This document shows positions 10,995-42,800 of a DNA stretch of 64,000 nucleotides, one piece after another. Every line of letters starts with the position of its first letter. Positions within the stretch are counted from its first letter, which is position 1. Under the pieces are notes generated by a model. It ran no database searches. It saw nothing but the letters and a program-made list of their open reading frames with translations, and was not told the DNA's origin. This stretch comes from Podarcis gaigeae (lineage: Eukaryota). The position numbers and the translations under genes were made by a program. The stretch lies in the NCBI GenBank assembly GCA_964106915.2, contig OZ066914.1. One strand, 5' to 3'.

Positions 10995-21033
<10,039 letters not shown>

Positions 21034-21473
21034 GAAGCTGAGGCCGTGCCTCTGTGCTAGAACTTTGGCAACCCTCCCTAGAAGTTCAGGGGACCCCTGA
21101 CTTTTATTTTCTTAATATAATGTTCTGCTGCGTTGCTCTCGCCTCCTAGAATGTATAAACGCTACTAAGGGATTCACATAGTGGACAGAGCTAAAGATAA
21201 GATATGATACATTGTATACGCTGTAGATATTGACTCTAATTTGTAAGATGTCGTTTATTTCTCCATTTCCACATGTGGAATCACCTTTTTTTATCTGATG
21301 CCCTGGGTACAGGAATCTGTATCACTGGAGTGATGTATCCTAGCCCTCTCAACTTATCTCTTATTTGTATTTTTTGTTTGGTTGTTTATTTTTGGTCAGC
21401 TTACTTATCTAAAATGTAGATGGCCCTTCCAGCTAGAAAATCCAAAGATCCAGGGCTCAACTATACAACGGCA

Positions 21474-21479
21474 AATAAA
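21474..21479 (+). terminator. Candidate polyadenylation signal of TMBIM1
   Basis: AATAAA about 440 nt after the stop codon, followed by T/GT-rich sequence. Confidence 0.5.
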
Positions 21480-21689
21480 ATTTATATTTTTGAATAAGAT
21501 CTCCCAGATTGATGTGATGGGGGCAGTGTTATGCTGGTTGCATTTATTATTGTTATTATTATTATTATTATTATTGCAATGTTTATTAACTTTCATTATA
21601 AAAAAATACAAATGTAATAATTACATTCATCAACATGAAATACAAAACAAACATATGGGAACTAGAAGAGCTTGCAGCTGTAATCTCAG

Positions 21690-21900
21690 AGCCTCTATCT
21701 ATATAATCTTTGAGCATTCTTGAAGAACAGGCGATGTCCCTGCAGTCTGGAGACAGGCAAATGTTGTCCCTGTCAAGGAGGGGATCACTTTCCTGAGTCC
21801 TCCCTCTAAGCTTCTAATAACTCACACATGGGTTCTAATAACCCAGCATGGGTTTCTCAAAAACAAGCAATACAACTGGGTGATACTGAAAGTCATGGAA
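21690..21900 (+). mobile_element. Decayed CR1 LINE ORF2 fragment
   Basis: Residual reading IIFEHS*RTGDVPAVWRQANVVP resembles the CR1 ORF2 segment IF..S..TG.VP.DW+.ANV.P. Confidence 0.5.
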
Positions 21901-23249
21901 TTTGATGAGGTCACCCAGGTGCAGATGAGGCTGATGGGAGTTGTAGTCTAAAACACCTGTCGGGCACCAGGTTGGGGAAAGGATAGTGTTGACAATAGTT
22001 GGGTGCTGCTTCAGACAGTAGTTATGTGCACAGTAAATCATACAGCATACACACCTTGTTCTAAAGAGTTAAAGGATCCCTATCTATCCCAAAAGCCTAG
22101 AGAGACTGTAAGCATGACGATTTGCCACAGACTTGTGCTTTGAAAAAAAGTGAGAAAGGGAGGGAAAGGGTGTACCTGTTCTGAAGCAATTGGAACCCAA
22201 GTCAGACATCGAAAGGGCTGTGCCTTTTGTTACTTATGGTCTCCCCAGATTGGCATGCAATGTTACACTGCAACGGGTGCAACCACTACATCTTCTCCTG
22301 GACTGGGAGAGCTTGACCACAGTAGTGCACTCACTGGTGACTTCAAAACTGGATTACTGCAGTACACTCTATGTGGGGCTAACCTTGTACTTCCCTTGGA
22401 AACTGCAGTTAATGCAGAATACTGCAGCTTCGTTGCTGGCAGGAGTGAGACTCTGAGCATGTAAAGCCTTTAGGCAAGATATATACACTGGTTGCCCATT
22501 TGCTTAGCAGGTTGACTCCTCCTTCCGTCTCAGAAGATCTGGGAAACATGGTGTGGTTTCTAAACTAATATTTTCTGTTATTGTGGGTTTCCTGTTTCTT
22601 TTGTGTTTGCATTCTGTTTTTTTCTTCAACTTTGAGGTGCACTTGCAGTCTCAGTAAGGCACAAAGTTCTGATCACTCTGACACCACAAAGTCTCATGTA
22701 CTATATTCCCAAACTACTAGAAGCCTACGCACTGTAAGCTGATGTTTGCTGCTGCCCCAATACAATTTTTTATGTCTCTGTAACACTTCCCCAATGATAG
22801 AAATACAAATCAAAGACCAGGGCATGCAGGGTTGGCCCTATCATTAGGCAAAGTGAAGCGACCACCTCAGGTGGCAGGTGCTGGGAGGCAGCCGCTGCCA
22901 CCACCCTTAAGTGTCCCTCTTAACCCTACAATGATCTTTGGGCTTTCGCAACCCCAACGTCCTGCTTCAACCCCATTTAGTGAGTCTATTTGCATGGATT
23001 ACAACACCAGACTCCATTTATGACTTACCTTAATGACTTGTCCCTGATGTGCTCAAAAGTCAGAAGTGTGTATCTGCAAGTGTTATGTAATTTGGAGGAA
23101 TATTAACCTTGCAATTGCCCAAAAGGTTTATCAGAAGCCAAGTGTTGGTTCAAACAGTAGTAGCTAGTGCATGATTCCAGGACAAGGACTGAATCCAGGA
23201 GGAAATCTGCTGATCTGGAGCCTTCCAAGACTTCTAGTGCTACTTTTTA

Positions 23250-24060
23250 GGTGTACAGGGAATTTCCTTTGACCTCGGTGCTAACATTTCCTCCCTGAGC
23301 TCTCGACGCAAGGGGAGCTTGCAATAGCTCCACTTCGCCTCTTGGAGGCACTCCCGCTCCATCCCAGAGCCCGCTTCAGACAATAGGGAGGGGACCAAAC
23401 GTTCCCCCTCCCATCACTTCCTCGTCATTTCTGGGAACTTTTCTCCCATCATTCTCGGGATTTACTTCGAAGAGCCGTAGGTCATTTTTCGGTCTAAGAT
23501 TTTGGCAACGGGAGAAGAGGGTGCTGGAGCTAGGCACACGGGTTAAGGTAAGGATGCTGGGAAATTTGGGGCAAGGGATTGAGTATCTGTTCTCAGTCAC
23601 ATGGCGTAGGGGGTCGCTTCGGTTTGGACAGGCATCGCTCTAGCCAGCGAAAAAGTCCCAGTCTCCAAAGTTCAGGTCTAATTTTAATTCCCGCGCTAAG
23701 ATTCAGGGGCGGAGGTGGAGTCTGATCTTGAGGGGATCAGTGGCGTAGCGTGGGGGGTGCAGGGGGGGCCGGCCGCACCGGGCGCAACATCTGGGGGTTA
23801 GGGTTAGGGGGCGCAAATCCACGGTTAGGGGGCACAAATTACTTGCCTTGCCCCGGGTGCTGACAACCCACGCTACGCCACTGGAGGGGATCAGTAACTT
23901 CCAGCCCATTTTTGCCTGGAAATAAACCGACTGGCACAAGGACCACCGGCGCCTTGTGTTCGGCTGTGACTTTTCTGACGGACCTACTAAGGGATAAACG
24001 CTACTCTCAAACTCACATCATCGCACGTGCGAGCAGACCCTCTCGGGTCCAGACAGGCCC
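23250..24060 (+). promoter_or_regulatory. CpG-enriched candidate promoter and non-coding first exon of the TMBIM1 paralog
   Basis: Local CpG enrichment; strong donor AAG|GTAAGG at 23547/23548; motifs GGGAATTTCC (NF-kB, 23258-23267), CACTTCCT (ETS, 23415-23422), CGTCA (23423-23427) and TTCTGGGAA (STAT/GAS, 23429-23437). Lies about 3.8 kb upstream of the acceptor at 27378. Confidence 0.5.
23738..23883. mobile_element. Young 146-bp hAT MITE
   Basis: Perfect 17-bp TIRs CAGTGGCGTAGCGTGGG / CCCACGCTACGCCACTG and a perfect 8-bp TSD GAGGGGAT (23730-23737, 23884-23891). Confidence 0.9.
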
Positions 24061-27000
24061 AGGACACTTCCAGCTTCAGAGATCCTTAGCCCATAATAAC
24101 GACAATGCAAAAATATCAAAATAAGGCTCTTAAAAAAGAGTGAGACGTCATTTGATTAAAAAAACAATTAACGCAAGCTTTCCTTTTCTGTGCAAATGCA
24201 CTAATTATTGAGGTGGAAATGTATTTTTTGTGCCATGCCACAGTTGATACTAAGCATGGTGAGTCTGTTTGAATGCTCTTGTTCCATAACGGAGCAGTAA
24301 TGGTTCTTTACCTGCTCCAACATGTTTCATGGAAGCCGCTAATTCAGGCAAACCGGCAAAAGTATGCCATGAAATTGTGCTATTAAGAAATAACATTAAG
24401 ATATGCACCAGAGAGTCGCAAGTTTGAGTATGTCTTGAAGCCATTTCCTTTGAATTGCAATGTTTCAAAGTTTAATGAAGATACTTGTTTGAGGAAGATG
24501 GCCTTGTCAGTGAGGTATTTTGAGGTTTCTTTGATGTACAGTGCTGCTTGCTGTGAATTGCTGCAGAAAGTAGATCTCCATTACTCAAAATGATCGTGGG
24601 TGGAGGAACTCTCCTGTGTGGATGAAACCGTTGCGACTTTGGGGGCTTTTTAGTTTGGAAAAACTGAGTAAGAAGGGACAAGATAGAGTTGTATGAGATT
24701 ATACATGATGTGGAGAAAGTGGATTGAAAGAAGTTTGTCTCCCCCTCTCCTGATACTGGAACTGGGCTGCAAAACTGAATGCTGGAAGTTTTGAGACAGG
24801 TAAAAGAAGGTACGTTCTTCAAACAGCATGTAGTCAAAACGATGGGATTCAATCCCACAAGAGGAAGTGATGGCCACCAACTTGGATGGCTATAAAAGAG
24901 GATTAGACAAAGTCATGGAGGGATAAGTATATCTGTGGAAGCCAGATAACACTAGGTAAGTATGCCTCTGAATACCTGTTTGCTGGAAATCACCTGTTGT
25001 TCCACACACGTGGTTGACCGCCATGAGAACAGGATACAGAACTAGATAGGCACCTGTGTTTCCATGACTTTGATGGGTATAAAATGCAGTGCCAATTTAA
25101 AGCATGTATGTTATTCACATATCATCGTATTCTTGCAGATACATTTATACGTTGTATTAATTGTTCTTAGAAATATTGATAGTCTTAAAAACAGTGATGG
25201 GGGACCATTGGGTTTCCCAATATTGCTGAAGGACAACTCCCATCAGCCCCAGTAAGCATGGCCAATGGCCAGGGATGATGGGAGTTATTGTTCAGCAACA
25301 TCTGAAGGGCTAAAGGTTCCCAACACATTCTCTAAAAGATCTGGAATGTGAATATATAATAAATAGAACTGTCAGGCCCATATCCCCTCTGCCATAGAAC
25401 CAAATGCTGTCAATTTGGCAGATTGACAGAGGCTATTAGGGGTCAGCCCAAACAAAAATTTCAAAAAGAATGAGAAAATATAAAGGATACCTTAAAAAGG
25501 AGTGCCCTCAAATTAATACTTGGACTTGTTTCAATTAACTTCTGCAAAATAAATTATGGCCTTTAAGTTAAAAAACAGAAAGAAAAAAGCAGTGATAACG
25601 AAATAAGGAGACAGTTTACAAAAAATGAAAAGAGAACCATGTTGAGGATGAAGGAAGTTAATTGGAAGAAAAGAAGAACTGAAACATGGTATATATATTG
25701 TTAATTATTTGTTCAAGCTGTCCATCAACCTGTCCAGTAAAGTTAGTGAGGAAATGGGGGGCGGGGGAAAGAACCAAATGCTGTTCCATTTAGCCAGTAT
25801 GCTGTTCAGATGTTGGTGGGTGGTAGTGTATTAAGATTACAATAATATATGTATGTATTCTGAGAATACTTGCATTCAGAAGTGACAGACCCCTAAAGAA
25901 AAAAGGGGGTCATGACTAACCAATAGCAGACAGTCCTTCCCCCACTTAACCACAGAGTTTGTTTTGCTCAGGGTTGCGCTTCCTGTGAGAACTCACAGTG
26001 TGAGGATTTTTTAAATATATGGAACTGCTTTTAAATGAGCAGGTGATAGTGGTGGCCAGGATTGCCTTTCCCCTCAGTTTAGGTGGCTATATCCACCATA
26101 TGCCCTTCCTTCAATAGGTCTCATTGAGCAGCAACATTGAGTCATGCCTTAGTGACAGCCAGATCACACTCTTCATGGGGCTATTTTTGAAGAGTTCAGA
26201 ATCTGGCTGCTGGGAGACGGAGATGGGTTGCAGAGGGTCAGTCCTGAAACAAGGATGGTTAGTTTCAGGGTCCAGTTCAGAATGTCTCCCCCACCCCCCT
26301 TTTCATTGCAATGTTCCATTTATTAAAAATATACACCTCTTTGAAGAAACACTGCAAATCAGGCAGCTAGTGTCGTGATAGATACTTTCAGCTATGTCAG
26401 GTGTGGGGAACTTTTGGCTCTCCAGATATTGCTGAACCACAACTCCCACCAGCCCCAGCAAGCATGGTCAATAGCCAGGGATGATGGGCATTGTCATTCA
26501 GCAACATCATCTAGAGAGGGCTGAAGGTTCCCCACACCCAAGCTATGTCATGGAGTGCAGACACCTTTCCTCCATGGCCCTAGAAGACAAGGCAACAGGC
26601 TATGGGGAAATAACAGGAGTTTGAACCTACAGATAGGCTACCTCAGAGACCATTTTTCTTATGCATAGGCCAGTTCTTAAGAACGTGCTTTGCAGCTCCA
26701 GCTGAGCAGAAGTAGGTGGCAGCCCCTTGTCCAAATTCCCACCACCAGGAACTCATGCATTATAGAAACTCCCTCATCTTTGTTCTTTATGGTCCTGCCT
26801 TTACAGCCTCCTGAAGGTCAATATCTCTGGAGTAAACAGTCGCTCTGGCAGTGTTAGAAACTCAAATGGCTCTTTAAACCAGGGCTACAGTTGCCGAAAC
26901 AAAATGCCTAGTTGTCATTTGGGGGCCATATGGCTTGGAAGTTGTATTTTCCAACATGACTTTTTGGTTTTCTAAATTCAAATATAATGGATAGAATTCT

Positions 27001-27406
27001 ACAGGATGTGATGCTCATGGGTGAAAACAGTCAAGATCCAAGGATCCCTAGGCATGCAGCTCCAGATGGTGGAGACATCAAACACCATCCTGGCACTTGG
27101 GCATCTTCACTTGGTTGCAAGTAGCTGATAGCCAGGAGCAAAATTCCCCTGGTACCTGGTGAATTTTGAATGCTGCATTCTGGATCCAACACCTTTTCCC
27201 TTATGGTTTATGCTTGGCACACCTTGCTGGGCTCCTTTGGCCTGGTATGTTCAGAACCAGCAGTTCAGAGAAGGGGTGCTGCCTCAGGGAAGGGCATGTT
27301 GTATTTTGCACCCTGTATTTTATGTTTGTTTTCACTCTCCAAGTGATAATGAGGGTTTATCTCCTTGGTTTTTTCCAGGTGCTGTGCTAAGCCTCCCTGA
27401 GACATC

Positions 27407-30400
27407 ATGGCAGAGCAGAGTCCACCTCCCTATGATGGCAAGAAAACTGGAGCTGTAGGTGCGAGAGCATACTTTGACTCACCTGGTTAAAAGCAGAGAT
27501 TCTGCAAGAAAGGTGGCAGAGGGGTGAGGGGCAAGAATATTGCAAATTGCTGGGGGACAGGAGAATCTCCACAAACAGGGAGGAAAGTTGAGAACTGGTA
27601 TGAGGAGAGGCGCCAGGTACTAGGCAAGCCAAGAACCAAAATAGATGGGATGTTAAATGCATGGTTAATATATTTCTTAAACTACAAACAGTTGCCACTG
27701 GTGGGGGCTACCAGCAACTATTGGGATGGCAGTGGGTATTGATGGATAATATAGTGCCATGTTAAAGGTCCTGTTGAACCACTGTTTGAATTCTACTTCA
27801 TGCTAAGTGTGGAAAAGCAATGCTTCAGCAGCGTCTATGGGCCCTAGGGTGGAATCTGTACCATCCAAATCTTGTGGCTTTGAAATTTACATTAACAAAT
27901 GTTGCTGTTTGTCATCAGATACAACAGATTTGGAGTGTCTCGCAGAGGAAGATGGGGGTTTTCGCATTGCTTGTTGGGTTGACAAGAATGTCCGGCAAAC
28001 TTTCATTCGCAAGGTAAGTCTGAAGGCACTTTGAGGGAGAGGGAGAAGGCATATATGATAGGGTCAAGGTGCTCTAGTACACAATTCAGCAACAGTCACC
28101 ATTCATGTGAATCTGATCTTGCTACTGGGTTATCTTGGCATCTGTAAATTGCAACATGCTTGTTTGCATTTATATATACATATGCAGATGCTCACATCTT
28201 GTTTGTCTTCATGACCAGGTCTACAGCATCATCACCCTTCAGCTGTTGGTGACTGTGGGCATCGTTGCACTCTTCACTTTTTCGTAAGTTTTCTGGTGCT
28301 TTGCTAGAACTCTGGAGGGGTTCTGGGACTCTAAAGGTAGGGGTTATCAGAATGAACCAGTTCTACCCCACTATTCTGACATCTGGTTATTTCTGTTCCC
28401 ATTTAGCTGCATTTGGAAATTCACATTCTAGATTGTAGAAGATGAAATTCTGTACCTGTGCCATTTCCCTAAAATCAGAAAAAAAGTATTTTATGTTGAT
28501 TTGTTTTTAATTTATTTATTTTTTAATCTGTCCTGCAATTTTAAAGTGGTGAAATTATTCAAATATCTGCCTCTCTATCATTTGGGCTTGTTTTGTGGAA
28601 CTTTTTTCTAGATGGGAGGGGATACTTTATTTTGTGACTTTGGCTTTTCTCAAAATCTTTAATAAAGAGATATTTGAATGGGTTCTTTCCCCCTTTTTCT
28701 TTTTGCCCATTAAAAAAAACATGCAAAATTATGCAATGAAAGAATTTCACCAGTGCATCGTTTCTCCATTGTTATAATTTTGTCTTTTAAATGGAAAACA
28801 TAAATTTAAAAACCTTGTCCTTTCAAAGTTTCATCATTTTCACTACGGAAAAATGGCAAAATGCTCCTCCAAAGTCCAGCTGGATTCTGCCCACAATGTT
28901 CTGATCCAGAAACTATTCTGGCAGTACAGAACTGCAAGAACCAGGGCAGGTATCTCATCTTGTGCTCTCTTCCTTCTCCACAGACACCCTGTGAGCCATT
29001 ATGTGCAAAGGAATATTGCCCTGTACTATGTATCTTAGTAAGTATCACTCCCTATACAGATGCAGAGCCAAATTCCGCTCTTGACCTGTTGCCAAGACAG
29101 ATTGCTCTACTGGCCAGCTAAGCTGCTTCATGTCAGATTCTCTCACCCTGTCTCTCCTGTAACTTCCATCACTACCATTTCATAACAGCACAATGGCTGT
29201 GTTGTGCAGGGGGCCTCTGGGGAATAAGTTGCACATGGTGTCCTTCCCTAGAGGAAACCTGCCTTCTTCATCCATAGTTTCCTGATGAAACGTTGACATC
29301 TGATTTTACTGGTAATTTTAATGCGCTTTTTATATTTTATGTAAAATGCTGTTGAAGTATATAAATTCTATTAAATTAAATAACAGACATGCATAGTCAA
29401 TTGATGGGAGGGATATTATTTTTGTATGGAGGCTATTTTCCTTCATGGTTCAAGAAGGGCTTGAGGGAGCTCCTACATTTGGAAAGCTGTTTATTTATTA
29501 GAGTTGCCAGCTAGTTTTAAATAAGTCATCTCGCTCTCTCTCTTTTTCATCCCTAGTGCTGTATTCTTGATCTGCTACCTTGTGCTGGTCTTGTGTAGAA
29601 GCATCCAGTACGTATCTGTTGACGACATTTGTGATCACACAAAAAACCGAGTTTCAACATTTGCTGGGACTCATAAGGAGGGGACAACGACAGAAGATGG
29701 ACCTGTCAAAGGAGTTAGCATTTTGACAATGGCTTTGGATATAAATTGCCTTGGTATTTTACTTGGCCAGCTCTCTGGTACAGTGGCTTCACTTCTGTCC
29801 ATAGGGCCAGTTCAGAGAGAGAACTACTGGCTGACTCAGTTCCCTGTCAGTTGTGCTGTGGGGTACTACAGGGAACTTGTATTTTCCCCAAATTAACATC
29901 TCCATAAAGCCGCTGGGAGCAGCCATTAGGACAGGGGTCAGTAAACTTTTTCAGCAGGGGGCCGGTCCACTGTCCCTCAGACCTTGTGGGGGGCCGGACT
30001 ATTTTTTTTTTTGGGGGGGGAATGAACAAATTCCTATGCCCCACAAATAACCCTGAGATGCATTTTAAATAAAAGCCATATTCTACTCATGTAAAAACAC
30101 CAGACAGGCCCCACAAATAACCCAGAGATGCATTTTAAATAAAAGCACATATTCTACTCATGTAAAAACACGCTGATTCCCAGACTGTCCGCAGGCCGGA
30201 TTTAGAAGGTGATTGGGCTGGATCCAGCCCCCGGGCCTTAGTTTGCCTACCCATGCATTAGGAGATTTGAAGTGCAGTGTCATCAGTATGTTGAATTCTC
30301 TCAGAAGGCTCCTTTTCTTGAGGTGAGACCGCCTGCACGTACTCTCTGACTCTCTTGCCGGTGTCTTTCAGGAGGCGCTTCCCATGGAACATAATCCTCA

Positions 30401-33400
30401 TGACTATCTTTGTAAGTACAGTTTTTTGTGTGGTTTGCATTCGAATGATGCAAAATCTCTATTGGGGGGAGATGGTGGAAGAAGGGTCTAAGATGAAGTG
30501 TAGGGCAATGCATTTGACTCGCCACAAATTTTCAAGCAAAATAAATTGTCCAAATTGGTTTAGTATGTAAAAAATAAATACTTGCAATTCTATCCCCTTT
30601 TCATAAATTCAGAACACCTTTGTATATCAAATATTGGGATCAACTAACTAGCCTTGCTAGTGGAAGTGGGCTTTCCCCCTTTTCTTCTCCCTACACCCCC
30701 AAAATTGACTTTGGGTGTGTATGAGAGAAGCCACAGAAAAGTATGTAGGGAAAAGTGGGGTGGGGGTGGGTTGTTCCATCTGGTGAGGTGAAAAGCTTGT
30801 GCTGACTGGATGATTGCCATAGTGCTAGGAAAAGGGCCAGCACAGAGTAGCAGATAAAGTATTTCTGTTATGTAAATAATGGAAGAAGCCGAAACTATTT
30901 GTCCTGATGTGTAACTAGGGGGTCAAAGGATGCTGTAGGTCAGAAGTGGGGAACCTGTGACCCTCCAGATGTTGTTGGACTCCAACTCCCATATGTCCCA
31001 GCCATGATGGTCAGTGGCCACAGATTACGGAATCTGTTAGATCTGGAAGGCCACATTTTCACCATCTCTAGTGCAGATGGTGCTCTGTTAATTTTTGTTT
31101 TGTTTTCTGATTTTCCCTAGACCATGTCCACGGCATTCATGACTGGCACAATCGCAAGGTACTGTGCAAAGTGGTAAATGGAAGTGATACAGTAGAGGCC
31201 TACACAGTGGGAAGCTGTTTCTGAGCTGGATTTAGAAAATGTCTCCAAATAGGTCATATCCCCAGACGCTACTGCACATCCCTTTTCACCCCTCTGCATG
31301 GAACTCATTTCTATGGTTGTGGCTGCAAAAAAATTAAATTAAATTAAATTAAAAATTGCATAGCAAAAGTGTGGAAATAATTTAACATCCTGACAGAATG
31401 TGAAAAGTTCAGCAGGTGGAAAGTACAGGAGGTAGTAGTGAGGGAAACAATAGCCAATAATGCAAAATTAAGTCTGCAATCCTAAACAAACCTAGAATTA
31501 TGGGTGCTTGGAGTTGAACTGACCAAAGGTCATCTACTCCAACTTCCTGCTTATGCAGGCAGTCTGCTGCCACAGCTTCCCTGGGAGATGGCTGTCCAGC
31601 CTCTCCTTTAAAAAAAACCAACACCCCCCCCTTACTAGATTCTTTAATTGCTACTGGGGAAATTCCACTGAACATAGTGGAGCTTATTTCTGAGTAAACA
31701 TCCCTAGGATTGCACTGTGAGAGAAGCAAACAATCAAGTGGATTCTTGATGAAATAAGGAAGCAGAAGGGTCTTGGCTCAATGATAGAGACCTGTTCTGC
31801 GTGCAGATGCTCCCAGCTTCAATTCCTAGGGCTGAGAGAAACCTGCCTGAAACCTTCGAGAGCTGCTGCCAGTCAGTGTAGGCATAACTGAGCTGGATGA
31901 ACTGAAAGGTTGACTTGGCATAATGCAGCTTCCTATTTTCCTATGTTTGCACCAGCAAAATCATGTGGCTGGAGCATTGGATACAACCCCTCAAGTTTGA
32001 AAAGTTGTTGTTGTTTAGTCGTTTAGTTGTGTCCGACTCTTCGTGACCCCATGGACCAGAGCACGCCAGGCACTTCTGTCTTCCATTGCCTCCCGCAGTT
32101 TGGTCAGACTCATGTTTGTAGCTTCGAAGACACTATCCAACCATCTCGTCCTCTGTCATCCCCTTCTCCTTGTGCCCTCCACCTTTCCCAACATCAGGGT
32201 CTTTTCCAGGGAGTCTTCTCATGAGGTGGCCAAAGTATTGGAGCCTCAGCTTCATGATCCAGTGAGCACTCAGGGCTGATTTCCTTCAGAATGGATAGGT
32301 TTGATCTTCTTGCAGTCCATGGGACTCTCAAGAGTCTCATCCAGCACCATAATTCAAAAGCATCAATTCTTCAGCGATCAGCCTTCTTTATGGTCCAGCT
32401 CTCACTTCCATACATCACTACTGGGAAAACCATAGCTTTTACTATACGGACCTTTGTTGGCAAGGTGATGTCTCTACTTTTTAAGATGCTGTCTAGGTTG
32501 GTCATTGCTTTCCTCCCAAGAAGCAGGCGTCTCTTAACCATCTGCAGTGATCATGGAGCCCAAGAAAGTAAAATCTCTCACTGCCTCCATTTCTTCTCCT
32601 TCTATTTGCCAGGAGGTGATGGGACCAGTGGCCATGATCTTCGGTTTTTTGATGTTGAGCTTCAGACCATATTTTGCGCTCTCCTCTTTCACCCTCAATA
32701 AAAGGTTCTTTAATTCCTCCTCACTTTCTGCCATCAAGGTTGTGTCATTTGCATATCTGAGGTTGTTGATATTTCTTCCAGCAATCTTAATTCCGGCTAG
32801 GGATTCATCCAGCCCAGCCTTTCACATGATGAATTCTGCATATAAGTTAAATAACCAGGGAGACAATATATAGCCTTGTCGTACTCCTTTCCCAATTTTG
32901 AACCGATCAGTTGTTCCATATCCAGTTCTAACTGTAGCTTCTTGTCCCACATAGAGATTTCTCAGGAGACAGATGAGGTGATCAGGCACTCCCATTTCTT
33001 TAAGAACTTGCCATAGTTTGCTGTGGTCGACACAGTCAAAGGCTTTTGCATAGTCAATGAAGCAGAAGTAGATGTCTTTCTGGAACTCTCTAGCTTTCTC
33101 CATAATCCAGCGCATGTTTGCAATTTGGTCTCTGGTTCCTCTGCCTCTTCGAAATCCAGTTTGCACTTCTGGGAGTTCTTGGTCCACATACTGCTTGAGC
33201 CTTCCTTGTAGAATTTTAAGCATAACCTTGCTAGCGTGTGAAATGAGTGCAATTGTGCGGTAGTTGGAGCATTCTTTAGCACTGCCCTTCTTTGGGATTG
33301 GGATGTAGACTGATCTTCTCCAATCCTCTGGCCACTGCTGAGTTTTCCAAACTTGCTGGCATATTGAGTGTAGCACCTTAACAGCATCATCTTTTAAAAT

Positions 33401-36400
33401 TTTAAATAGTTCAGCTGGAATACCATCACTTCCACTGGCCGTGTTATTTGCAGTGCTTTCTAAGGCCCATTTGACTTCACTCTCCAGGATGTTTGGCTCA
33501 AGGTCAGCAACCCCACTACCTGGGGTGTACGAGACATCCATATCTTTCTGGTATAATTCCTCTGTGTATTTTTGCCACCTCTTCTTGATGTCTTCTGCTT
33601 CTGTTAGGTCCTTACCACTTTTGTCCTTTATTATGGCAATCTTTGAACGAAATGTTCCTTTCATATCTCCAATTTTCTTGAACAGATCTCTGGTTCTTCC
33701 CATTCTGTTGTTTCCCTCTATTTCTTTGCATTGCTCGTTTAAGAAGGCCTTCTTATCTCTCCTTGCTATTTTTTGGAAATCTGCATTCAGTTTCCTGTAT
33801 CTTTATCTCCCTCGCATTTTGCTTGCCTTCTCTCCCCCGCTATTTGTAAGGCCTCATTGGACAGCCACTTTGCTTTCTTGCATTTCCTTTTCATTGGGAT
33901 GGTTTTCGTTGCTGCCTCCTATATAATGTTGCGAGCCTCCATCCATAGTTCTTCAGGCACTCTGTCTAGCAAATCTAAATCCTTAAACCTGTTCCTCACT
34001 TCCACTGTGTATTCATAAGGGATTTGATTTAGATTGTATCTTACCGGCCCAGCGGTTCAGTGCATAAACTTGGATTACTGTTATGTTAAAAGGTCTGCCT
34101 TGGATTCGTATCGAGATCATTCTATCATTTTTGAGATTGCATCCCAGTACTGCTTTCGCCACTCTTTTGTTGACTATGAGGGCCACTCCATTTCTTTTGC
34201 GGGTTTCTTGCCCACGGTAGTAGATATGATGGTCATCCGAACTGAATTCGCCCATTCCCGTCCATTTTAGTTCACTGGTGTCCAGGATGTCAATATTTAT
34301 TCTTGCCATCTCATTTTTGACCACATCCAACTTACCAAGGTTCATGGTTCTTACATTCCAGGTTCCTATGCAATATTTTTCTTTACAGCATTGGACTTTC
34401 CTTTCGCTTCCAGGCATATCCGCAACTGAACGTCCTTTCGGCTTTGGCCCAGCCGCTTCATCAGCTCTGAATCTACTTGTACTTGTCCTCCGCTCTTCCC
34501 CAGTAGCATGTTGGATGCCTTCCGACCTGAGGGGCTCATCTTCCAGCGTCATAACTTTTATATGCCTGTTGTCTTTGTCCATGGAGTTTTCTTGGCAGGG
34601 ATACTGGAGTGGCTTGCCGGTTCCTCCTCCAGGTGGATCACGTTTGGTCAAAACTCTCCACTATGACCGTTTGAAAAGTACCTTGTGCCTAATTTTGTTG
34701 TTGTTGTTGCATTATAATAAAATTATTTTAACAAAAATGTATGATTTATTTTTTTTACCTTTTTGTTACCAGCGTGTATGATACCAAGACTGTAGTCATT
34801 GCCATGATCATCACAGCAGTTGTAACCATCACTGTCACTGTTTTCTCCTTTCAGACAAAGGTGAGAAAGCCCGTTTTTTTCCAGTACAGTTAGCAGGCTT
34901 AGGAAGGGTGATTACCCTGTGGTGGAAATGGTGACTTAGCTAAACATGTTTGGATCCCACCCTTACAATACAAGGCCCTTGTCATAAACAAGAAATTCCT
35001 TGTCATGGTGTTATGTACACCTGGCCTGTCATTACGACATGCAGCCCTCCATTTCATGAGTTAGGCGAGACAGCCACCCTTCTCTTTTGTATGCTCCCAT
35101 GAGCTGATCTTTCGGGGGGGGGGGGACACCATAGATATAATAATGCAGGCTAATGGCTGCAATTGTGACTACCCCTCCATTAAAAAATGGTATATGCAGG
35201 TAGAAAACTGGTTCCAGCCTGGCGAGCTCTAAACTAGAGGCCTTCCTTTTCCTCACACACTGGATTTACATGGATAGGAACATGGAAACACTCAATACAA
35301 AGTAGTTGTCTCCCAGGGTGCTTATGCGGTTCTTGCTGTTTGCCTTAAACTTTCACATCAGCTGTATATTGTAGACCCTCTTTGTGTGTAGTTTCAGAAC
35401 TGCACAGGCAATATTTTATCTCATTAAAATAAATTGATTGTAAAAACCTGGTTACATGGCTTGGTGGGGGCAGAAAGGGATGGAGGAGAGAGTGTTGTTG
35501 TTCTCAGTTCCTTCTTTTGGGTTTCCCACAGGCATCTGATTGGCCACTGTGAGAAGAGGATGCTGGACTATATGGGCATTTGGCCGGATCCTGTTCTTAA
35601 GTCCCCCCCAGGCATCTGGGAGCAAATTAGTAGGCTTCCGCCATGTGTATGTAACACACTAAAATCAGAAAAGAATTACTTTCTCTTGCTTTCCTGTCTG
35701 TCGTGCTAAAAAAAAAAGCCCCCACAGTTCCTCTGTTTACTGATTTGAGAGGAACTCCATCATACCTAGTGGGGCTTCTGAACAGACTTGCAGAGAATTG
35801 GGAATTCTAATCTGAGGTAGCCATGGCTGAAAGTGGAAAGTGGACAGTTTTTATGTCAGGTTAGTTAATCCAGGACACTGTTGTCTTTGGCTCTGCCCAC
35901 CTGTTGCCCTCAGTACAAAAATGGTTGCCCACCCGTGACGGAGGACTTCATAACTGAATACATTTGGGCAGTAATACTTCCAGAGGTAATAAGGTATTTT
36001 TGTCACTTCCTCCGTTGACAGGTGGATCTCACAACCTGGCGTGGTTTCTTCTGTATCATGGCCATTGTCTTCATGGTGACTGGCATTGCCACTGCCATTG
36101 TCCTGAGCTGCAAATACGTAAGTGGCTGGGGAACTTGCTAGCCTATGGGATCAGCAATACAACAAAGCTTCCAGTGGCAAAGCAATCCCAGTTGATATGT
36201 GTGTGTGTGTTCGGTGGGGGCTGCTGCATTGTTTCAGGAGGCTTTGAGCAATGGCTGCCCTTGCCCAATCTCTCACTTTCCTGAAAGAGTTCATTCCCTT
36301 CCTTTGGACCAAGGCCTGTTTAGAAGTTCAGCTTTATTCCCTTTGCCTGCTGCCTTAAGCATCCCTTCAGTATGCAATATGTTCTCCATGGGAATATTTT

Positions 36401-38152
36401 TGTTTTTTAAATGTACATCTATTTCTGTTAAGTCGCCTTGGGCCATTTTGAGAAACAGCGACTCGTAAACATAAATAAATACATATCGGCAGGTCTCTTG
36501 CTAGGTGATTACTTAACCTTTTTCATTCAGAGATGTAGAAACTCATTAGTTGACGCTCTTTTTCTTGTCTTGCAGATGTACTGGCTCGACTTGCTTTATG
36601 CGGCCATTTCTGCTGTAGTCTTCACCCTGGTTAGTAGAGATTTACTGTTGATTGCATGAATAGAGGTACCCCTTTTCCTGAAACAATATACGTGCAGCAT
36701 TTTGAATATTCTGGGTGTACTGTGTTAATTCTGATAGGCAACAACTCAAGAGTTTCCTGTTTCGCCACCACCTCTTTGAGGTGGAGACCCTTCAAGAATC
36801 TTCTGGCTGTCCCAGACTAGCAGCATAACAGGCAAATGAAGCTAGAGGGGCACAAAAACAAGGAAAGGCTTTGGAGAGTGGATTTTGTCTAGCATCTTTA
36901 GATTTCTAGCAAAATTTATTTATTGCTTACGTTTCTACCTTGCTCCTCAGCCAAAAGACAAGTACGGCTGACAGTACTACTGTATGCAATGTAGCTTCAT
37001 AGCAAATAGATGTGTGCTAAATCCAATGGCAGCTGCGTTGAGGAGGTGGGTACCAATTTTGTGGGAAGATGCTGGAACATTAAGATCCTTGGCTTTGTAG
37101 CTTTCACTATGTTTGCAGACACCAACGAATGCTTAACTACAGCTGCAAATTACTTTGAATTGGTTTCGGCCTGTCAGTATTTTCATCCCTCCCATTGCAA
37201 AGATCACCAGATCATGTTTGTTTTACTTTCTGTCTCAGAGAAAGGAGGGGGCGGAAACCACTCTTCCAGACTTCCGTCCCTAGCACTGTGCTGGTTTTTC
37301 TTTGATCTGTCTAGAGACTAGGTGGCAGTATGAGAGAGCTGGTTCTCTCATGCATGTCCGTTATGTTCTTTTGTTTTGTAGTAGTAGTAAAGTTAGGTAT
37401 GCAACAAAACCTCCACTGTTTCGTTTCCATTACTCTGCTGCATTTGAGGTGCTCACAATAGCAAATGTGAGTCCACTGCACCAGGACCTGTTCCAGAGGA
37501 ATGCTGTGCTCTGCTGTTCCTGTGATCAGAGGGTTGGTGAAAGTGCTCCCAACACCCATCCCATGCAGCTGCTGAAGACGTGGGCTTTAAAGGGTGTACA
37601 GACAGGGCCTTGCTATATTGCAATAGGCTTAAGAAAAGTTTACAGATGACTAAGTGGGAAACTCTGGACCAAACTAGACACAGCATTTTTCATTTAGTTG
37701 GTCCCACATAGCTGCCCCCTGCACCTTAATCAATAGCTGGTGTGGGGAGGGGGAAATCAGAGGGATCATGGCAGCCCCAGCCCAATACATTTTGGCACCC
37801 GAGGCAAACCACAAAATGGTTCCCTAGCCAGGGAAGAAGCAGTGAGTGGAGAGTTACATCAGGAACAGGTGGGGAGCAGGAAATCAAATCAGCTTTACCC
37901 AATGGTTGAGGTGGGAATCAAAGGCTGTTGATGGGGAAAGGAGGAAGCTTTAAAGATAGACCGTTTATTGAATGATGTGGCTAAATGCTGCTTTGTGATT
38001 CCTTACAGTTCCTTGCTTATGATACTCAGCTGCTGCTGGGGAACAGGAAATATGCCATCAGTCCCGAGGATTACATTTATGGAGCCATCCAGATCTACAT
38101 AGATGTCATCTACATCTTCCTCTCCTTCACAAGGCTTGTGGGCAGGAATTAG
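27407..38152 (+). CDS. TMBIM1-like tandem paralog (protein lifeguard 3-like), 258 aa, 11 coding exons, intact frame
   Basis: Coding exons: 27407-27458, 27919-28013, 28219-28283, 28984-29037, 29557-29607, 30372-30411, 31121-31158, 34773-34860, 36022-36117, 36576-36629, 38009-38152 (777 nt). Internal exon lengths 95/65/54/51/40/38/88/96/54 are identical to TMBIM1. Translation MAEQSPPPYDGKKTGAVDTTDLECLAEEDGGFRIACWVDKNVRQTFIRKVYSIITLQLL...RRFPWNII...FSFQTKVDLTTW...[41 protein letters not shown]. Confidence 0.9.
29932..30255. mobile_element. hAT/Charlie-type MITE with internal tandem duplication
   Basis: Ends CAGGGGTCAGTAAACT...AGTTTGCCTACCCATG; perfect 8-bp TSD CATTAGGA (29924-29931, 30256-30263); a roughly 70-bp unit (CCCCACAAATAACCC...GTAAAAACAC) is repeated twice inside. 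Confidence 0.85.
32006..34668 (-). mobile_element. BovB (RTE-clade) LINE, internally deleted and inactive
   Basis: ORF pieces: 34013-34651 (APE endonuclease IGTWNVRTMN), 32822-33703 (RT: CSNYRTIALISHASK, FIDYAKAFD, GVRQG) and 32534-32737. The YADD motif is mutated to YAND; premature stops and internal deletions are present. BovB-type 3' end with (CAA)n tail; 11-bp TSD GTTTGAAAAGT at 31995-32005 and 34669-34679. Confidence 0.92.
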
Positions 38153-40309: not shown

Positions 40310-42441
40310 CTAGGACTTCGTTTCAGCAAGTCCCTCTGTTTCTCGCAATGCCGTCCTGTATCGCTCTCTTTCATAGTCTCCCTCATTGGATGCCCTCATT
40401 TTCTGGCGGACTTTCAGCTGCTTCAGACGGTTCTTGTCCACTTCTCGTTTAGTGAGGAGGAAAAGGATGATGCCAGAAGGGAAACCAATGGCCCTGGAGA
40501 GAGGCAAAGAATACATAAGCCACAACTTGCTCCCAGGAAGATTTTGCTTGGGGCTGTTCAGTCTCACACCACAGCCTGATATCCTTCCACTCCCATACTC
40601 AGCCCATATATTCAAGGGTTCCTTAGCATTTCCATCAAACTGAGTTGCCTGGCATTGTAGGCTGCAAGATTGACAACTAACCTGGGGAGATCATAAAACA
40701 AACTGATGAAATGATGCTCACCAAGCAATGCCAACTGCCTTCATGGGGTTCTTGCCCTTCCTCCCTGTGGGAATATACTCCACATGTTCATAGGTCTTTC
40801 CACCAGACTGTGGTTTTGTCTGTAATTCTTCCAAAGCCCTGCAGCTCCTGTGGAAGGATCGGGCAGGAGTTCTGAAAGGCACACCTAAGCCTACAGCTCG
40901 GTTCATAGTGGCAGAAAGAAGGCCTGCAAAGGAGACACACTATAGTGAAATTGTACTTTTAAACATTTCATCTAGATTTATCCACCAATGCTATGTCCTA
41001 AACTCACTGAGTAACGTTGACCCTTTTAGTTTATGTACATGAAAATGTGCCTAGTGGTCTGATCCTATGCATTTGTGCTTCTAGGTGTGCCTTAGCAAAG
41101 TTCCTAAGCTGTCTTTTAAGAGGTCATCCATAGTGTGTTTGTCAGCATATTGCAAAGTGTCTTTTAATGTGCCTGATCCTTGGGACAATTCTGGTATAAC
41201 AAATCCTGGCAGGAGACTAAAATGCCAGTCAGATGCAGAAAATTAATATGGCTTCTGTGCTTTGAACAAATTCCATGGAAGGATATTTTGGCAGGCATGA
41301 CTGTCCTCTTCTTCACAGAGCTGTTGAAGTGCAAAGGAGCTCTATTAAAATAAAAACAAGGCTCTGGGGATTGGAGGTGTCTGTGCCCTCACCTACCTGG
41401 CCATGATTTACAAAGTGCTCCTCCATGGGCTGTTGTTGCAGCATGGCACAACAAACAGGGAGCATTTTTAAACCTGCTTTTTTTGCACACATCTGGTAGA
41501 TTAAAAAAACCCCGTGTATTAAAAAATCCATCAATCATTGGTCATTTTGCCTACTTTGAAACTTGCCTGAAAAGTTGGTTTGTTGGAAAGCTTGTCAGGC
41601 TATCTCACAGACAATTTTCTTAAGGTGTGTGTGGATAGCTAAATAAATTCCTGCATGCATGCCTACAGTGGACCTCCAGTTTCCAAAACTTATGGAGGTA
41701 AATACTAATTGAGAGGAGGGTCAACCACATACAGTGTGAATATATTCCACCAAGTGCCACCCACTAGTGGGGACAGGAAAAAAGAGGCATAAAATTGAAA
41801 GTGCTGTGTGGACAACACACACACAAAATCACTCCCGTTATGTATCAATGCCCTAGAGTGGGTACAGCCAAGGTATACTTTCCCTGTTACTCCCTTGCTT
41901 CCGTTTACCTGACCTAACGGTGGGAAACAACACATATTTTTATTCACAAATCTTCATTGTTTCAGCCCCCATATTTTACGGAGGGCAGAACTGCAGAATC
42001 CTCCAGCCTGGGAAGCCTTTCTTTCTGACCCTCCTGTGCCGGGCGGGGGCTTTGCTGCCCGGCATTGTTTTGCTTGCCAGCTGATCGACGGCATTTATGC
42101 AGCGGATTTGGTCTGAGTCTGCCGCTCGCCGCTGTTTTTGGGGGGAGTTGCACCAAAAAGTGACATTTAAAACAACTACTGTGGGGCAGAGCCCTGGGCC
42201 CTGGCTGGGAATCTCAGCACAGCCACAGAGCTCTCTAGGCGACACCTCTTCCTCTCCTAACCAGCCCCAGCAGCAGCAGCAGCAGCTGCTCCTCCTCCGC
42301 CGCCGCCTAATTCACCAGCCTACCCGCTCGCTGTTTCCTCCCCGATGCCAGACCCCGCTTCCTCCCCAACAAGGTCGCATTGCACGGGCAGCCGCGCCTC
42401 CCCTCCCTACCCTGCAATCGAACCCTGCAAGCGGCCGCCAT
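40310..42441 (-). CDS. PNKD: PNKD (myofibrillogenesis regulator 1) short isoform MR-1S, about 138 aa; exons 1-2 are shared with the long isoform
   Basis: Exon 1 42441-42411 (MAAACRVRLQ; donor CAGG|GTAGGG, with an alternative in-frame donor at 42324). Exon 2 40923-40722 (GLLSATMNRA...EYIPTGRKGKNPMKAVGIAW). Exon 3 40493-40310 (AIGFPSGIILFLLTKREVDKNRLKQLKVRQKMRASNEGDYERERY...*). Motifs and phases (1, 2) match PNKD-S. The exon 1 3' boundary is the least certain. Candidate AATAAA (minus) at 39834-39839. Confidence 0.88.
42268..42285 (+). repeat. (CAG)6 microsatellite followed by CTC/CCG triplets in PNKD intron 1
   Basis: Direct reading of the sequence. Confidence 0.85.
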
Positions 42442-42800
42442 CTCGGGGAAAAGTTCTCTCTCGCTTCCTCCCGCTGCGCGCCAGGTACTAGCAAGGTCGA
42501 GGAGAAGGAAGCGAACCCGACACTACAACTCCCATGACTCCCTTTTTCGACGGCGAGGGGTCACATGGGCAACGAAGGCGCTCCTTCTAGGAGGAGGAGG
42601 AGGCGGCCCTCTGGCTCGGAACGCGGAGCTGGCGAATGAGGGAGTCCGCGCTGATGACCCCTCCTCCGATTCGCTAGCCCGTTCCGATCCGCTTCGCTGA
42701 TTGGCGGCGGAGACTTTCACCCCGCCCCCCCCCCGCGACGGGAGGGAGGAGGAGATCAGCGTAGGCGCGTGCGGGTTGCTGGTAGGCTGAAGTCGTCAGC
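42442..42800. promoter_or_regulatory. Bidirectional CpG-island promoter shared by PNKD and AAMP
   Basis: 359 bp between divergent ATGs. Contains ACTACAACTCCCA (ZNF143/THAP11-type motif, 42522-42534), an inverted CCAAT box (ATTGG, about 42700) and a GC box CCCGCCCC (about 42721). A YY1-like GAGATGGCGGC overlaps the PNKD ATG. Confidence 0.85.

Follow-up and report, generated by a model that had tools for sequence, protein, structure and literature searches.

The window analysed here, a stretch of 64,000 nucleotides from Podarcis gaigeae, contains two TMBIM1-type genes in tandem on the + strand, followed by a gene for a WD40 protein. The first, C1 (10995-21033), is the TMBIM1 (lifeguard 3) orthologue and consists of 11 coding exons that encode 315 amino acids in a frame without a stop; its introns are all GT-AG. 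Exon 1 of C1 (10995-11214) is long and encodes an N-terminal region with PSAP and PPxY motifs and a Pro/Gly/Tyr-rich tract. The membrane domain of C1 is identical to that of Podarcis raffonei XP_053258207 at 209 of 210 positions and retains the RRRFPWN, YDTQ and IYTD motifs. The second gene, C2 (27407-38152), also has 11 coding exons and encodes 258 amino acids. From the C1 stop to the C2 ATG the spacer measures 6,373 nt (21034-27406), in agreement with the gap of about 6.4 kb reported in a sequence-only reading of this DNA. It contains interspersed repeats and a CpG-rich stretch (23251-24250), and aligns to P. raffonei with 93-97% identity. On its right-hand side the locus has a conserved border, formed by a CpG island and the first coding exon, at about 42.8 kb, of the WD40 gene (42001-43250, + strand), which we take to be AAMP from its length, its domain and the human N-terminus. 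The order C1-C2-WD40 gene (423-445 aa) is the same in Podarcis, Eublepharis, Notechis and the window, and C1 and C2 are also in tandem in Rhineura. C2 therefore has the position beside this putative AAMP that is a trait of the TMBIM1/LFG3 orthogroup.

The C2 frame starts with an ATG, ends with a TAG and has no internal stop, and all ten introns are GT-AG; the gene is complete and intact, with canonical splice sites and no frameshift, as had been read from the letters. Exon 1 (27407-27458, 52 nt) holds the ATG and 17 codons with the PPPY motif inside, and ends in phase 1 as does exon 1 of C1. It is the counterpart of the first 16 or so codons of C1 exon 1, without PSAP and without the Pro/Gly/Tyr tract, and its ATG falls exactly where the CDS is annotated to begin in P. 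raffonei and Zootoca. Exon 2 (27919-28013) encodes an acidic linker and a W-x-D-K-N-V-R-Q-x-F-I-R-K box, and exon 3 (28219-28283) encodes TM1. After exon 4 (28984-29037), TM2 is encoded by exon 5 (29557-29607), the last two bases of which, CA, open a split codon CA/G (Gln). Exon 6 (30372-30411) carries an R-R-F-P-W-N box and is followed by exon 7 (31121-31158). Intron 7 (31159-34772, 3614 nt) is about 2.4 kb longer than in P. raffonei through an antisense LINE fragment, which contains a reverse-transcriptase ORF on the - strand (32822-33703). Exons 8 (34773-34860), 9 (36022-36117) and 10 (36576-36629) follow, the last of these with the donor GTTAGT that is also found in C1. The final exon (38009-38152, 144 nt including the TAG) encodes TM6, a loop and TM7, and contains YDTQ, SPEDY and IYID. 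All C2 exon boundaries are those of the NCBI gene models in P. raffonei and Zootoca.

Exons 2-10, of 95, 65, 54, 51, 40, 38, 88, 96 and 54 nt in that order, are equal in length and phase in the two copies, which confirms the earlier claim of identical internal exons. The terminal exons differ in length: C1 has 220 nt in exon 1 and 147 nt in the last exon, C2 has 52 and 144 nt. A recount of the membrane domain from exon 3 to the end gives exactly the 135/209 identical residues (64.6%) that had been counted by hand, and at the nucleotide level exons 2-10 agree at 410 of 581 positions (70.6%). Collinear blastn matches between C1 and C2 occur only over the exons, with flanks of no more than about 15 nt, and the remaining matches are non-collinear or inverted interspersed repeats. 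DNA similarity therefore ends at the exon edges, just as the introns had seemed not to be alignable by eye. Compared with the membrane domain of orang-utan TMBIM1, C1 is identical at 173 of 209 positions and C2 at 135. Unique changes number 10-11 in C1 against 49-52 in C2 (chi2 24-28; 11 against 49 for a chi2 of 24), about five times more in C2, and the stem branch in a maximum likelihood (ML) tree is 0.5 for C2 against 0.03-0.14 for C1. The asymmetric acceleration of the second copy, previously suggested, is thus seen in the counts. C1, rather than C2, should count as the TMBIM1 orthologue, and C2 merits a name of its own.

At least 15 further squamate genomes contain a C2 orthologue, which is found in amphisbaenians, skinks, cordylids, anguids, snakes and a gecko. 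Those of Rhineura, Notechis, Thamnophis, Erythrolamprus, Elgaria, Tiliqua, Hemicordylus and Eublepharis are 255-279 aa long, and in a profile search a score gap separates C2 orthologues (E 1e-119 or better) from all other proteins (1e-111 or worse). The C2 membrane domain is identical at 203-205 of 209 positions (97-98%) to that of the 258-aa ‘protein lifeguard 3-like’ of Podarcis, Lacerta and Zootoca. The RefSeq entries of this name (P. raffonei XP_053258270, Lacerta agilis XP_033017032, Zootoca XP_034983762, and those of Notechis and Eublepharis) are C2 orthologues that share the length class of 255-279 aa, the exon boundaries and a place flanked by TMBIM1 and the WD40 gene; they differ from C2 by species-level substitutions only, and none is identical to the C2 protein. 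Given the same exon boundaries in the NCBI models and its presence in 15 or more further squamate genomes, C2 is real and is neither chance nor artefact. The sequence-only reading had proposed a probably uncharacterised squamate channel. As a gene model C2 is not new, the databases labelling it ‘protein lifeguard 3-like’, but a literature search found no paper describing it. The matches listed in the profile and database searches include no C2 from Iguania, Varanus or tuatara. The listed matches likewise included no C2 protein derived from Logan transcripts, in contrast to many of the TMBIM1 type, so C2 expression may be low or tissue-restricted.

The last exon of C2 on its own matches Pfam PF01027 (Bax1-I) with an E value of 3.6e-7 over profile positions 165-206; its 30.6 bits fall below the whole-protein cut-off of 34.1 because only a single exon was in the query. 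All full-length C2 orthologues carry PF01027, the domain of the TMBIM superfamily. An AlphaFold2 model of the L. agilis orthologue, taken in place of C2 (membrane domain 205/209 identical), has a pLDDT of 87.3 and a pTM of 0.80 and displays the seven-helix BsYetJ-like fold: its best ten PDB matches in Foldseek are all BsYetJ (TM 0.70-0.77, probability 1.0). The family profile aligns to BsYetJ with an E value of 1.6e-10, and both gate aspartates are aligned. In C2 these residues, the di-aspartyl pH sensor of the superfamily, are present in YDTQ (human D268) and IYID (human D295), corresponding to BsYetJ D171 and D195, and the statement that both di-aspartyl residues are kept is correct. The second is replaced by Asn in two of 11 C2 orthologues (Eublepharis and Erythrolamprus), and thus the gate is not uniformly conserved. 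Despite the same predicted fold, BsYetJ of Bacillus subtilis (PDB 4PGR and related) is only 17-18% identical, has Arg60 where C2 has Gln, and lacks the eukaryotic cytosolic tail of C2.

The roles of R158, D268 and D295 have been described for human RECS1 (PMC8589314), and the arginine latch (R60 in BsYetJ, R158 in human RECS1), which keeps the di-aspartyl gate shut, is reportedly present in LFG1-4 (PMC8589314). At the R158 position C2 has Gln, encoded by the split codon CA/G, whereas both C1 (CG/G) and orang-utan have Arg. Gln is found here in ten of the 11 C2 orthologues, which therefore depart from the LFG1-4 pattern. This residue had been overlooked in the earlier reading. R159 and R160 are retained next to the Gln, and one of these neighbouring arginines might serve as the latch in C2. 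SPE[ED]Y, between TM6 and the last hydrophobic segment, is a lifeguard motif (PMC5451544); it occurs as SPEDY in the last exon of C2 and in ten of the 11 orthologues. The tail up to the FIRK box is 45 residues in C2 compared with 83-113 in TMBIM1. PSAP is absent from all 11 orthologues, PPPY is kept in nine, and the Pro/Gly/Tyr-rich tract is lost, so that the long tail with PSAP and PPxY of TMBIM1/LFG3 is not found in C2. PPPY is a ligand of NEDD4-type WW domains, and PSAP is of the TSG101/ESCRT-I ligand type. In all, C2 and TMBIM1 (RECS1 or lifeguard 3 of human and mouse; C1) have in common 11 exons of the same phases, a locus beside the AAMP-like gene, membrane domains that are 65% identical, the seven-helix fold, D268 and D295, SPE[ED]Y, and a PPxY motif in the tail; TMBIM1 differs in its tail of about 100 residues (about 45 in C2) with PSAP and the Pro/Gly/Tyr tract, and in the latch Arg158.

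The TMBIM/lifeguard family is usually given six or seven members, on a mammalian definition. Squamates possess an additional, long-retained gene derived from TMBIM1 beyond this mammal-defined set. We regard it as probable that C2 is a real and functional paralogue of TMBIM1 (lifeguard 3/RECS1) that arose by tandem duplication in stem squamates, changed fast and then came under constraint, and that most likely acts as a cation leak channel. C2 encodes a membrane protein of the seven-helix TMBIM/BsYetJ fold that most likely still serves endomembranes as a small cation (Ca2+) leak channel sensitive to pH. With the latch Arg replaced by Gln and both aspartates kept, its gating or pH dependence should differ from that of TMBIM1, and with a shortened tail that retains PPPY and lacks PSAP and the Pro/Gly/Tyr tract, so should its sorting and turnover. 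The changes in C2 fall on the parts singled out by experiments on human RECS1, GAAP and BsYetJ, namely the arginine latch and the tail sorting motifs, and leave the rest of the pore as it was. The two copies therefore offer a ready comparison for the roles of the latch and of the PSAP/PPxY tail. More tentatively, C2 could be a squamate-specific ‘latch-less’ lifeguard channel with a rewired gate, and with a tail released from ESCRT-I but still engaged by NEDD4-type ligases. If so, a naturally latch-less TMBIM1 that differs in pH gating and in endolysosomal sorting would have persisted beside the canonical gene for about 200 million years, the time for which C2 has been maintained in lizards and snakes.

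The same residue changes could also be read as a loss of conduction, C2 then partnering TMBIM1 in a modulatory or dominant-negative way, for instance in hetero-oligomers, or serving as a short-tailed adaptor of NEDD4-type ligases. The Gln at the latch, the Asn at the second aspartate in two lineages and a tail with little beyond PPPY would suit this reading, and the related GAAPs are described as oligomerising. However, most orthologues conserve the entire seven-helix core along with SPEDY and the two aspartates, and an interaction of C2 with TMBIM1 is purely hypothetical, which makes this reading unlikely beside that of a leak channel.

In the ML tree, where lacertid database orthologues stand in place of the window's own C2 protein and no TMBIM7 sequence is included, the C2 clade (100/99) is nested inside squamate TMBIM1 (96/92), which in turn lies within amniote (99/96) and tetrapod TMBIM1 (100/96). 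FAIM2-like proteins form the outgroup (100/99). C2 is thus inside the tetrapod TMBIM1 clade, and identity with FAIM2, a grouping that the sequence-only reading had put up for checking, is excluded. The order within the C2 clade mirrors the species tree (gecko / skink and cordylid / amphisbaenian and lacertid / anguid and snake). The gecko C1 is closer to C2 than to the other C1 proteins (96/93), so that any exact order of the duplications is provisional. The sister of the C2 clade is a third gecko copy (292-308 aa); like the independent TMBIM1 duplicates of turtles it is a lineage-specific extra copy named ‘lifeguard 3-like’, but unlike C2 it keeps a long tail and RRRFPWN. The turtle duplicates (317-364 aa) also have long tails.

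Synonymous divergence agrees with the earlier view of C2 as an old duplicate, the clade extending from gecko to snake: paralogue dS (0.74) exceeds the lacertid-gecko dS of C2 (0.58). Paralogue dS is 0.73-0.77 for every species pair used, which argues against gene conversion between C1 and C2. The duplication would have occurred in tandem between TMBIM1 and the AAMP-like gene in the stem lineage of living squamates, before geckos branched off and most likely later than the divergence from turtles and birds. C1 would then have stayed conservative, and C2 would have passed through a burst of amino-acid change followed by moderate purifying selection. It is improbable that C2 comes instead from an older amniote or sauropsid duplication, as an orthologue of, for example, eutherian TMBIM7/Lfg5, with losses in birds, turtles and most mammals and an artefactual nesting in squamates. 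Placing the duplication before the sauropsid crown lowers the lnL by 15.3 and is rejected only marginally (AU p 0.047, a borderline test on groups defined after the tree was seen); the long C2 stem branch makes the placement less safe, the tree is without TMBIM7, and paralogue dS is about three times the lacertid-amphisbaenian value (0.25-0.26). Against this, the best tree places C2 beside short-branched gecko genes, where long-branch attraction would have the opposite effect, paralogue dS is only about 1.3 times the gecko-lacertid C2 value, the turtle duplicates join turtle TMBIM1 rather than C2 (98/89), and Lfg5 has been reported in eutherians only (PMC5451544).

TMBIM7 (Tmbim1b/Lfg5) resembles C2 as an extra, poorly characterised lifeguard member nearest to TMBIM1 by name and similarity; it is eutherian only and testis-specific, maps to mouse chromosome 5 and is represented in human by the pseudogene TMBIM7P (PMC5451544, PMC6842137). 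No TMBIM7 sequence was among the best 120-150 listed matches of the word searches and the representative search. Compared with TMBIM7 by description alone, C2 is squamate-only among the matches listed, in tandem with TMBIM1 and nested in squamate TMBIM1. It shares neither the eutherian-only distribution nor the position of TMBIM7, which in mouse is presumably away from Tmbim1, and its identity with eutherian TMBIM7 is set aside by synteny and by the topology of a tree that had no TMBIM7 sequence.

The dN/dS ratio of C2 is 0.18-0.45 and significantly below 1 in all six pairs compared (0.40 against Rhineura, 0.18 against Notechis and 0.40 against Eublepharis; p 4e-4 or lower against neutrality). 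For C1 it is 0.16, and the difference between C2 and C1 is significant (0.40 compared with 0.16; Fisher p 0.019). These ratios indicate that C2 is under purifying selection, weaker than that on C1, and support the earlier proposal that the second copy has been kept by selection. It is very improbable that C2 is an ORF annotation without function, a duplicate that is decaying or silent in transcription. In favour of this reading, the ATG exon of C2 lies in CpG-poor DNA, the listed matches in the searched collections include no transcript-derived C2 proteins, and dN/dS against P. raffonei is 1.2, a value from only 3 synonymous and 12 non-synonymous differences. Against it, the lacertid, amphisbaenian, snake and gecko genes, over a synonymous divergence of 0.26-1.1, all preserve the frame, the exon lengths and each of the ten GT-AG introns, and about 88 residues, the pore motifs among them, are invariant in 11 C2 orthologues.

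Motif scanning of the window located two last exons of TMBIM type, both on the + strand, at ~20.9 kb and ~38.0 kb, and translation of the window against itself revealed ten exon pairs that are collinear between the two genes concerned. The first, C1, is the TMBIM1 (lifeguard 3/RECS1) orthologue and the second, C2, is a further TMBIM1-type gene. Models built by reading splice flanks contain 11 exons each, encoding 315 amino acids for C1 (10995–21033, + strand) and 258 for C2 (27407–38152, + strand), with a spacer of 6,373 nt between them. Both have an ATG start, a terminal stop, no internal stop and GT-AG at every intron, and the last exon of each matches Pfam Bax1-I. Exons 2–10 are equal in length and phase, whereas exon 1 of C1 (220 nt) is longer than that of C2 (52 nt). 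The boundaries of the C2 exons are those of the annotated coding sequences in Podarcis raffonei and Zootoca. The 11-exon model, free of internal stops, confirms the intact second gene proposed at these coordinates by an earlier sequence-only reading, and the amino acid identity between C1 and C2 from exon 3 to the end, counted there by hand as 135/209, was exactly the same when recomputed. Database queries were single window exons or database proteins; for these counts, frames across exons were read by coordinates.

At the nucleotide level C1 and C2 resemble each other in their exons alone, apart from a few adjoining bases. Further matches are interspersed repeats, scattered or inverted; these non-collinear matches arise because a SINE-like short interspersed repeat occurs in both genes. 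Copies are spread in both orientations over the introns of C1 and C2 and the spacer (11720–11791, 13051–13167, 15460–15557, 17625–17758, 19753–19887, 25159–25334, 26385–26508 and 30927–31024).

The membrane domain of C2 is identical at 203–205 of 209 positions to 258-residue RefSeq/GenBank proteins from five lacertids: P. raffonei (XP_053258270), P. muralis (XP_028598100), P. lilfordi (CAI5762745), Lacerta agilis (XP_033017032) and Zootoca vivipara (XP_034983762). None of the five is identical to the C2 protein of the window, the DNA of which shares ~95% identity with P. raffonei. Orthologues of 255–279 amino acids were found in Rhineura, Notechis, Thamnophis, Erythrolamprus, Elgaria, Tiliqua, Hemicordylus and Eublepharis, with partial models in Ophiophagus and Liasis. 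A profile of 11 full-length C2 proteins gave E-values of ≤1e-119 for C2 and ≥1e-111 for all other matches. The profile matches listed include no C2 from Iguania, Varanus, tuatara or any non-squamate, and the database matches listed include no tuatara, crocodilian, Anolis or Varanus protein of any kind. The 10 kb that follow TMBIM1 in Pogona vitticeps (locus L008:25275–35274) contain no C2-type exon, the corresponding spacer in Rhineura being ~21 kb, and the matches listed from the other protein searches likewise include no C2 of Iguania; C2 may have been lost in Iguania or be located further from TMBIM1. The two genes lie in tandem in Rhineura as well, and the order TMBIM1-type gene, C2, WD40 gene (423–445 amino acids) is common to Podarcis, Eublepharis and Notechis. 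An assembly duplication is ruled out by the 65% identity of the two copies and by the presence of C2 in many genomes.

A search for short transcript-like C2-type protein fragments found none except a king cobra genome model, and the protein-collection matches listed contain no transcript-derived C2 protein. The proposal that this is an uncharacterised squamate gene stands, with one correction: the literature search found no paper describing C2 or a squamate ‘lifeguard 3-like’ gene, but all five lacertid proteins are already annotated as ‘protein lifeguard 3(-like)’. C2 is an additional member of the TMBIM family, annotated and, as far as the literature search found, undescribed.

A maximum likelihood tree was calculated from 71 proteins, excluding the fragmentary or chimeric rows P0018, P0085, P0156, P0167 and P0236 (support is given as UFboot/SH-aLRT). 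The tetrapod (100/96), amniote (99/96) and squamate (96/92) TMBIM1 clades were all recovered, with the C2 clade (100/99) inside the squamates and branching in the order of the species tree: gecko, skink with cordylid, amphisbaenian with lacertid, and anguid with snake. Orthology of C2 to FAIM2 is ruled out, as the FAIM2-like proteins form a separate outgroup (100/99). The literature describes TMBIM7/Lfg5 as eutherian-only and testis-specific (PMC5451544, PMC6842137). No TMBIM7 sequence was among the database matches listed, and the distinction of C2 from TMBIM7 rests on topology, synteny and the literature.

The synonymous divergence (dS) between C1 and C2 is 0.74 within the window and 0.73–0.77 across all cross-species pairings. 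This distance is the same within and between species; the copies have therefore not undergone gene conversion since the lacertid–amphisbaenian split, and recent conversion between them is ruled out. Lacertid and gecko C2 differ by a dS of only 0.58, and the larger paralogue value agrees with a duplication that would be somewhat older than crown Squamata, with a probable origin on the squamate stem. The age of crown Squamata is put at roughly 200 million years. A tree constrained to place the duplication before the sauropsid crown was worse by 15.3 log-likelihood units (AU p 0.047), and one constrained to a single clade of all C1 genes was worse by 9.0 units (p 0.047). Both tests are borderline and their groups were defined once the tree had been inspected, which makes any order of the early events provisional.

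A third TMBIM1-type gene occurs only in geckos (P0218, P0159, P0197, P0188). It encodes 292–308 amino acids with a long tail and retains the RRRFPWN motif. In the tree it is the sister of the C2 clade (100/99), a pattern suggestive of two duplication events early on, with the third copy then lost outside geckos. In Eublepharis macularius this gene lies immediately upstream of C2 (L002:1–5290), the order being shown for these last two members. Turtles have a TMBIM1 gene pair of their own, forming two sister clades (98/89 for the extra copies together with turtle TMBIM1), one of which has a long stem of 0.28 (P0181, P0192, P0209 and P0204 versus P0211, P0249, P0233, P0225, P0235, P0231, P0243, P0220, P0224 and P0034). 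The turtle duplication is independent of the squamate one.

Selection was estimated by the Nei–Gojobori method over exons 3–11 (210 codons). Between the window and Rhineura, dN/dS is 0.40 for C2 (dS 0.262, dN 0.104) and 0.16 for C1 (dS 0.248, dN 0.041), a significant difference (Fisher p 0.019). For C2 the ratio is 0.18 against Notechis (dS 0.908, dN 0.166) and 0.40 against Eublepharis (dS 0.579, dN 0.230), and all six C2 pairs fall below neutrality (p ≤4e-4). C2 differs from its P. raffonei orthologue by 3 synonymous and 12 non-synonymous changes, lacertid counts that are too small to weigh. Unique changes number 11 in C1 versus 49 in C2 with orang-utan as the outgroup (χ2 24.1), and 10 versus 52 with chicken (χ2 28.5). 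Most of the acceleration of C2 falls on the stem (branch length 0.5) and deep branches of the tree; within lacertids the two genes evolve at similar rates. C1 matches orang-utan TMBIM1 at 173/209 positions, and C2 does so at 135/209. The overall interpretation of the sequence-only reading, an old TMBIM1 duplicate kept by selection, is thus upheld, as are the asymmetric acceleration of C2 and, with orang-utan in the place of human, the much closer likeness of C1 to TMBIM1. C2 is genuine: an ancient TMBIM1 paralogue of squamate-wide occurrence.

A search of the PDB with a single sequence gave no match, and a family profile was required to reach BsYetJ (E 1.6e-10). In that alignment D171 and D195 of BsYetJ correspond to the YDTQ and IY-x-D motifs. 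For the Lacerta orthologue, AlphaFold2 gave a confident model (pLDDT 87, pTM 0.80) in which seven long helices follow a disordered tail, and the ten best PDB matches of this model are all BsYetJ. Human RECS1 has an arginine latch, R158, and gate aspartates D268 and D295 (PMC8589314). Both aspartates are present in the C2 of the window, as had been read from its sequence; the second is replaced by Asn in Eublepharis (P0083) and Erythrolamprus (P0234). The latch position is Gln in C2 and in 10 of the 11 orthologues, the codon being split at the exon 5/6 junction as CA|G in C2 versus CG|G in C1. Erythrolamprus (P0234) is the sole orthologue in which this position has reverted to Arg.

The tail of C2 is ~45 residues long, compared with 83–113 in TMBIM1. 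PPPY is found near the N-terminus in 9 of 11 C2 proteins and PSAP is absent from all 11. PPxY and P(S/T)AP are known from the general literature as NEDD4-type and TSG101-type ligands, respectively, and the roles given to them here follow that literature. The C2 gene is intact and under selection, and its product is a TMBIM protein of seven helices that retains the aspartates of the pore; like RECS1, it would most likely still serve endomembranes as a pH-sensitive leak channel for cations. Its gating may be altered because the latch residue has changed, and its sorting or turnover may likewise be altered because the NEDD4-type ligand is kept and the TSG101-type ligand and low-complexity tract are lost. 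The changed latch and trimmed tail are the features of C2 of greatest experimental worth.

Intron 7 of C2 contains ~2.4 kb (within 31757–34669) that is absent at the same place in P. raffonei. It carries an antisense reverse-transcriptase fragment (ORF 32822–33703, − strand; Pfam RVT_1, E 1e-25), and the extra DNA is a truncated LINE insertion. A CpG-rich stretch lies in the C1–C2 spacer (23251–24250; GC 0.51–0.57, CpG observed/expected ~0.7). The ATG exon of C2 is CpG-poor, and the stretch may belong to C2, as its promoter or a 5′ exon, or be unrelated. PNKD would be expected to carry a metallo-β-lactamase H-x-H-x-D-H motif, and the − strand of the window was searched for one with no match. 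Downstream of C2, at 42001–43250 and onward on the + strand, the WD40 gene begins within a CpG island, its first coding exon lying at ~42.8 kb. The protein has 425 amino acids in P. raffonei and its N-terminus resembles that of AAMP, which is most likely the identity of this gene.
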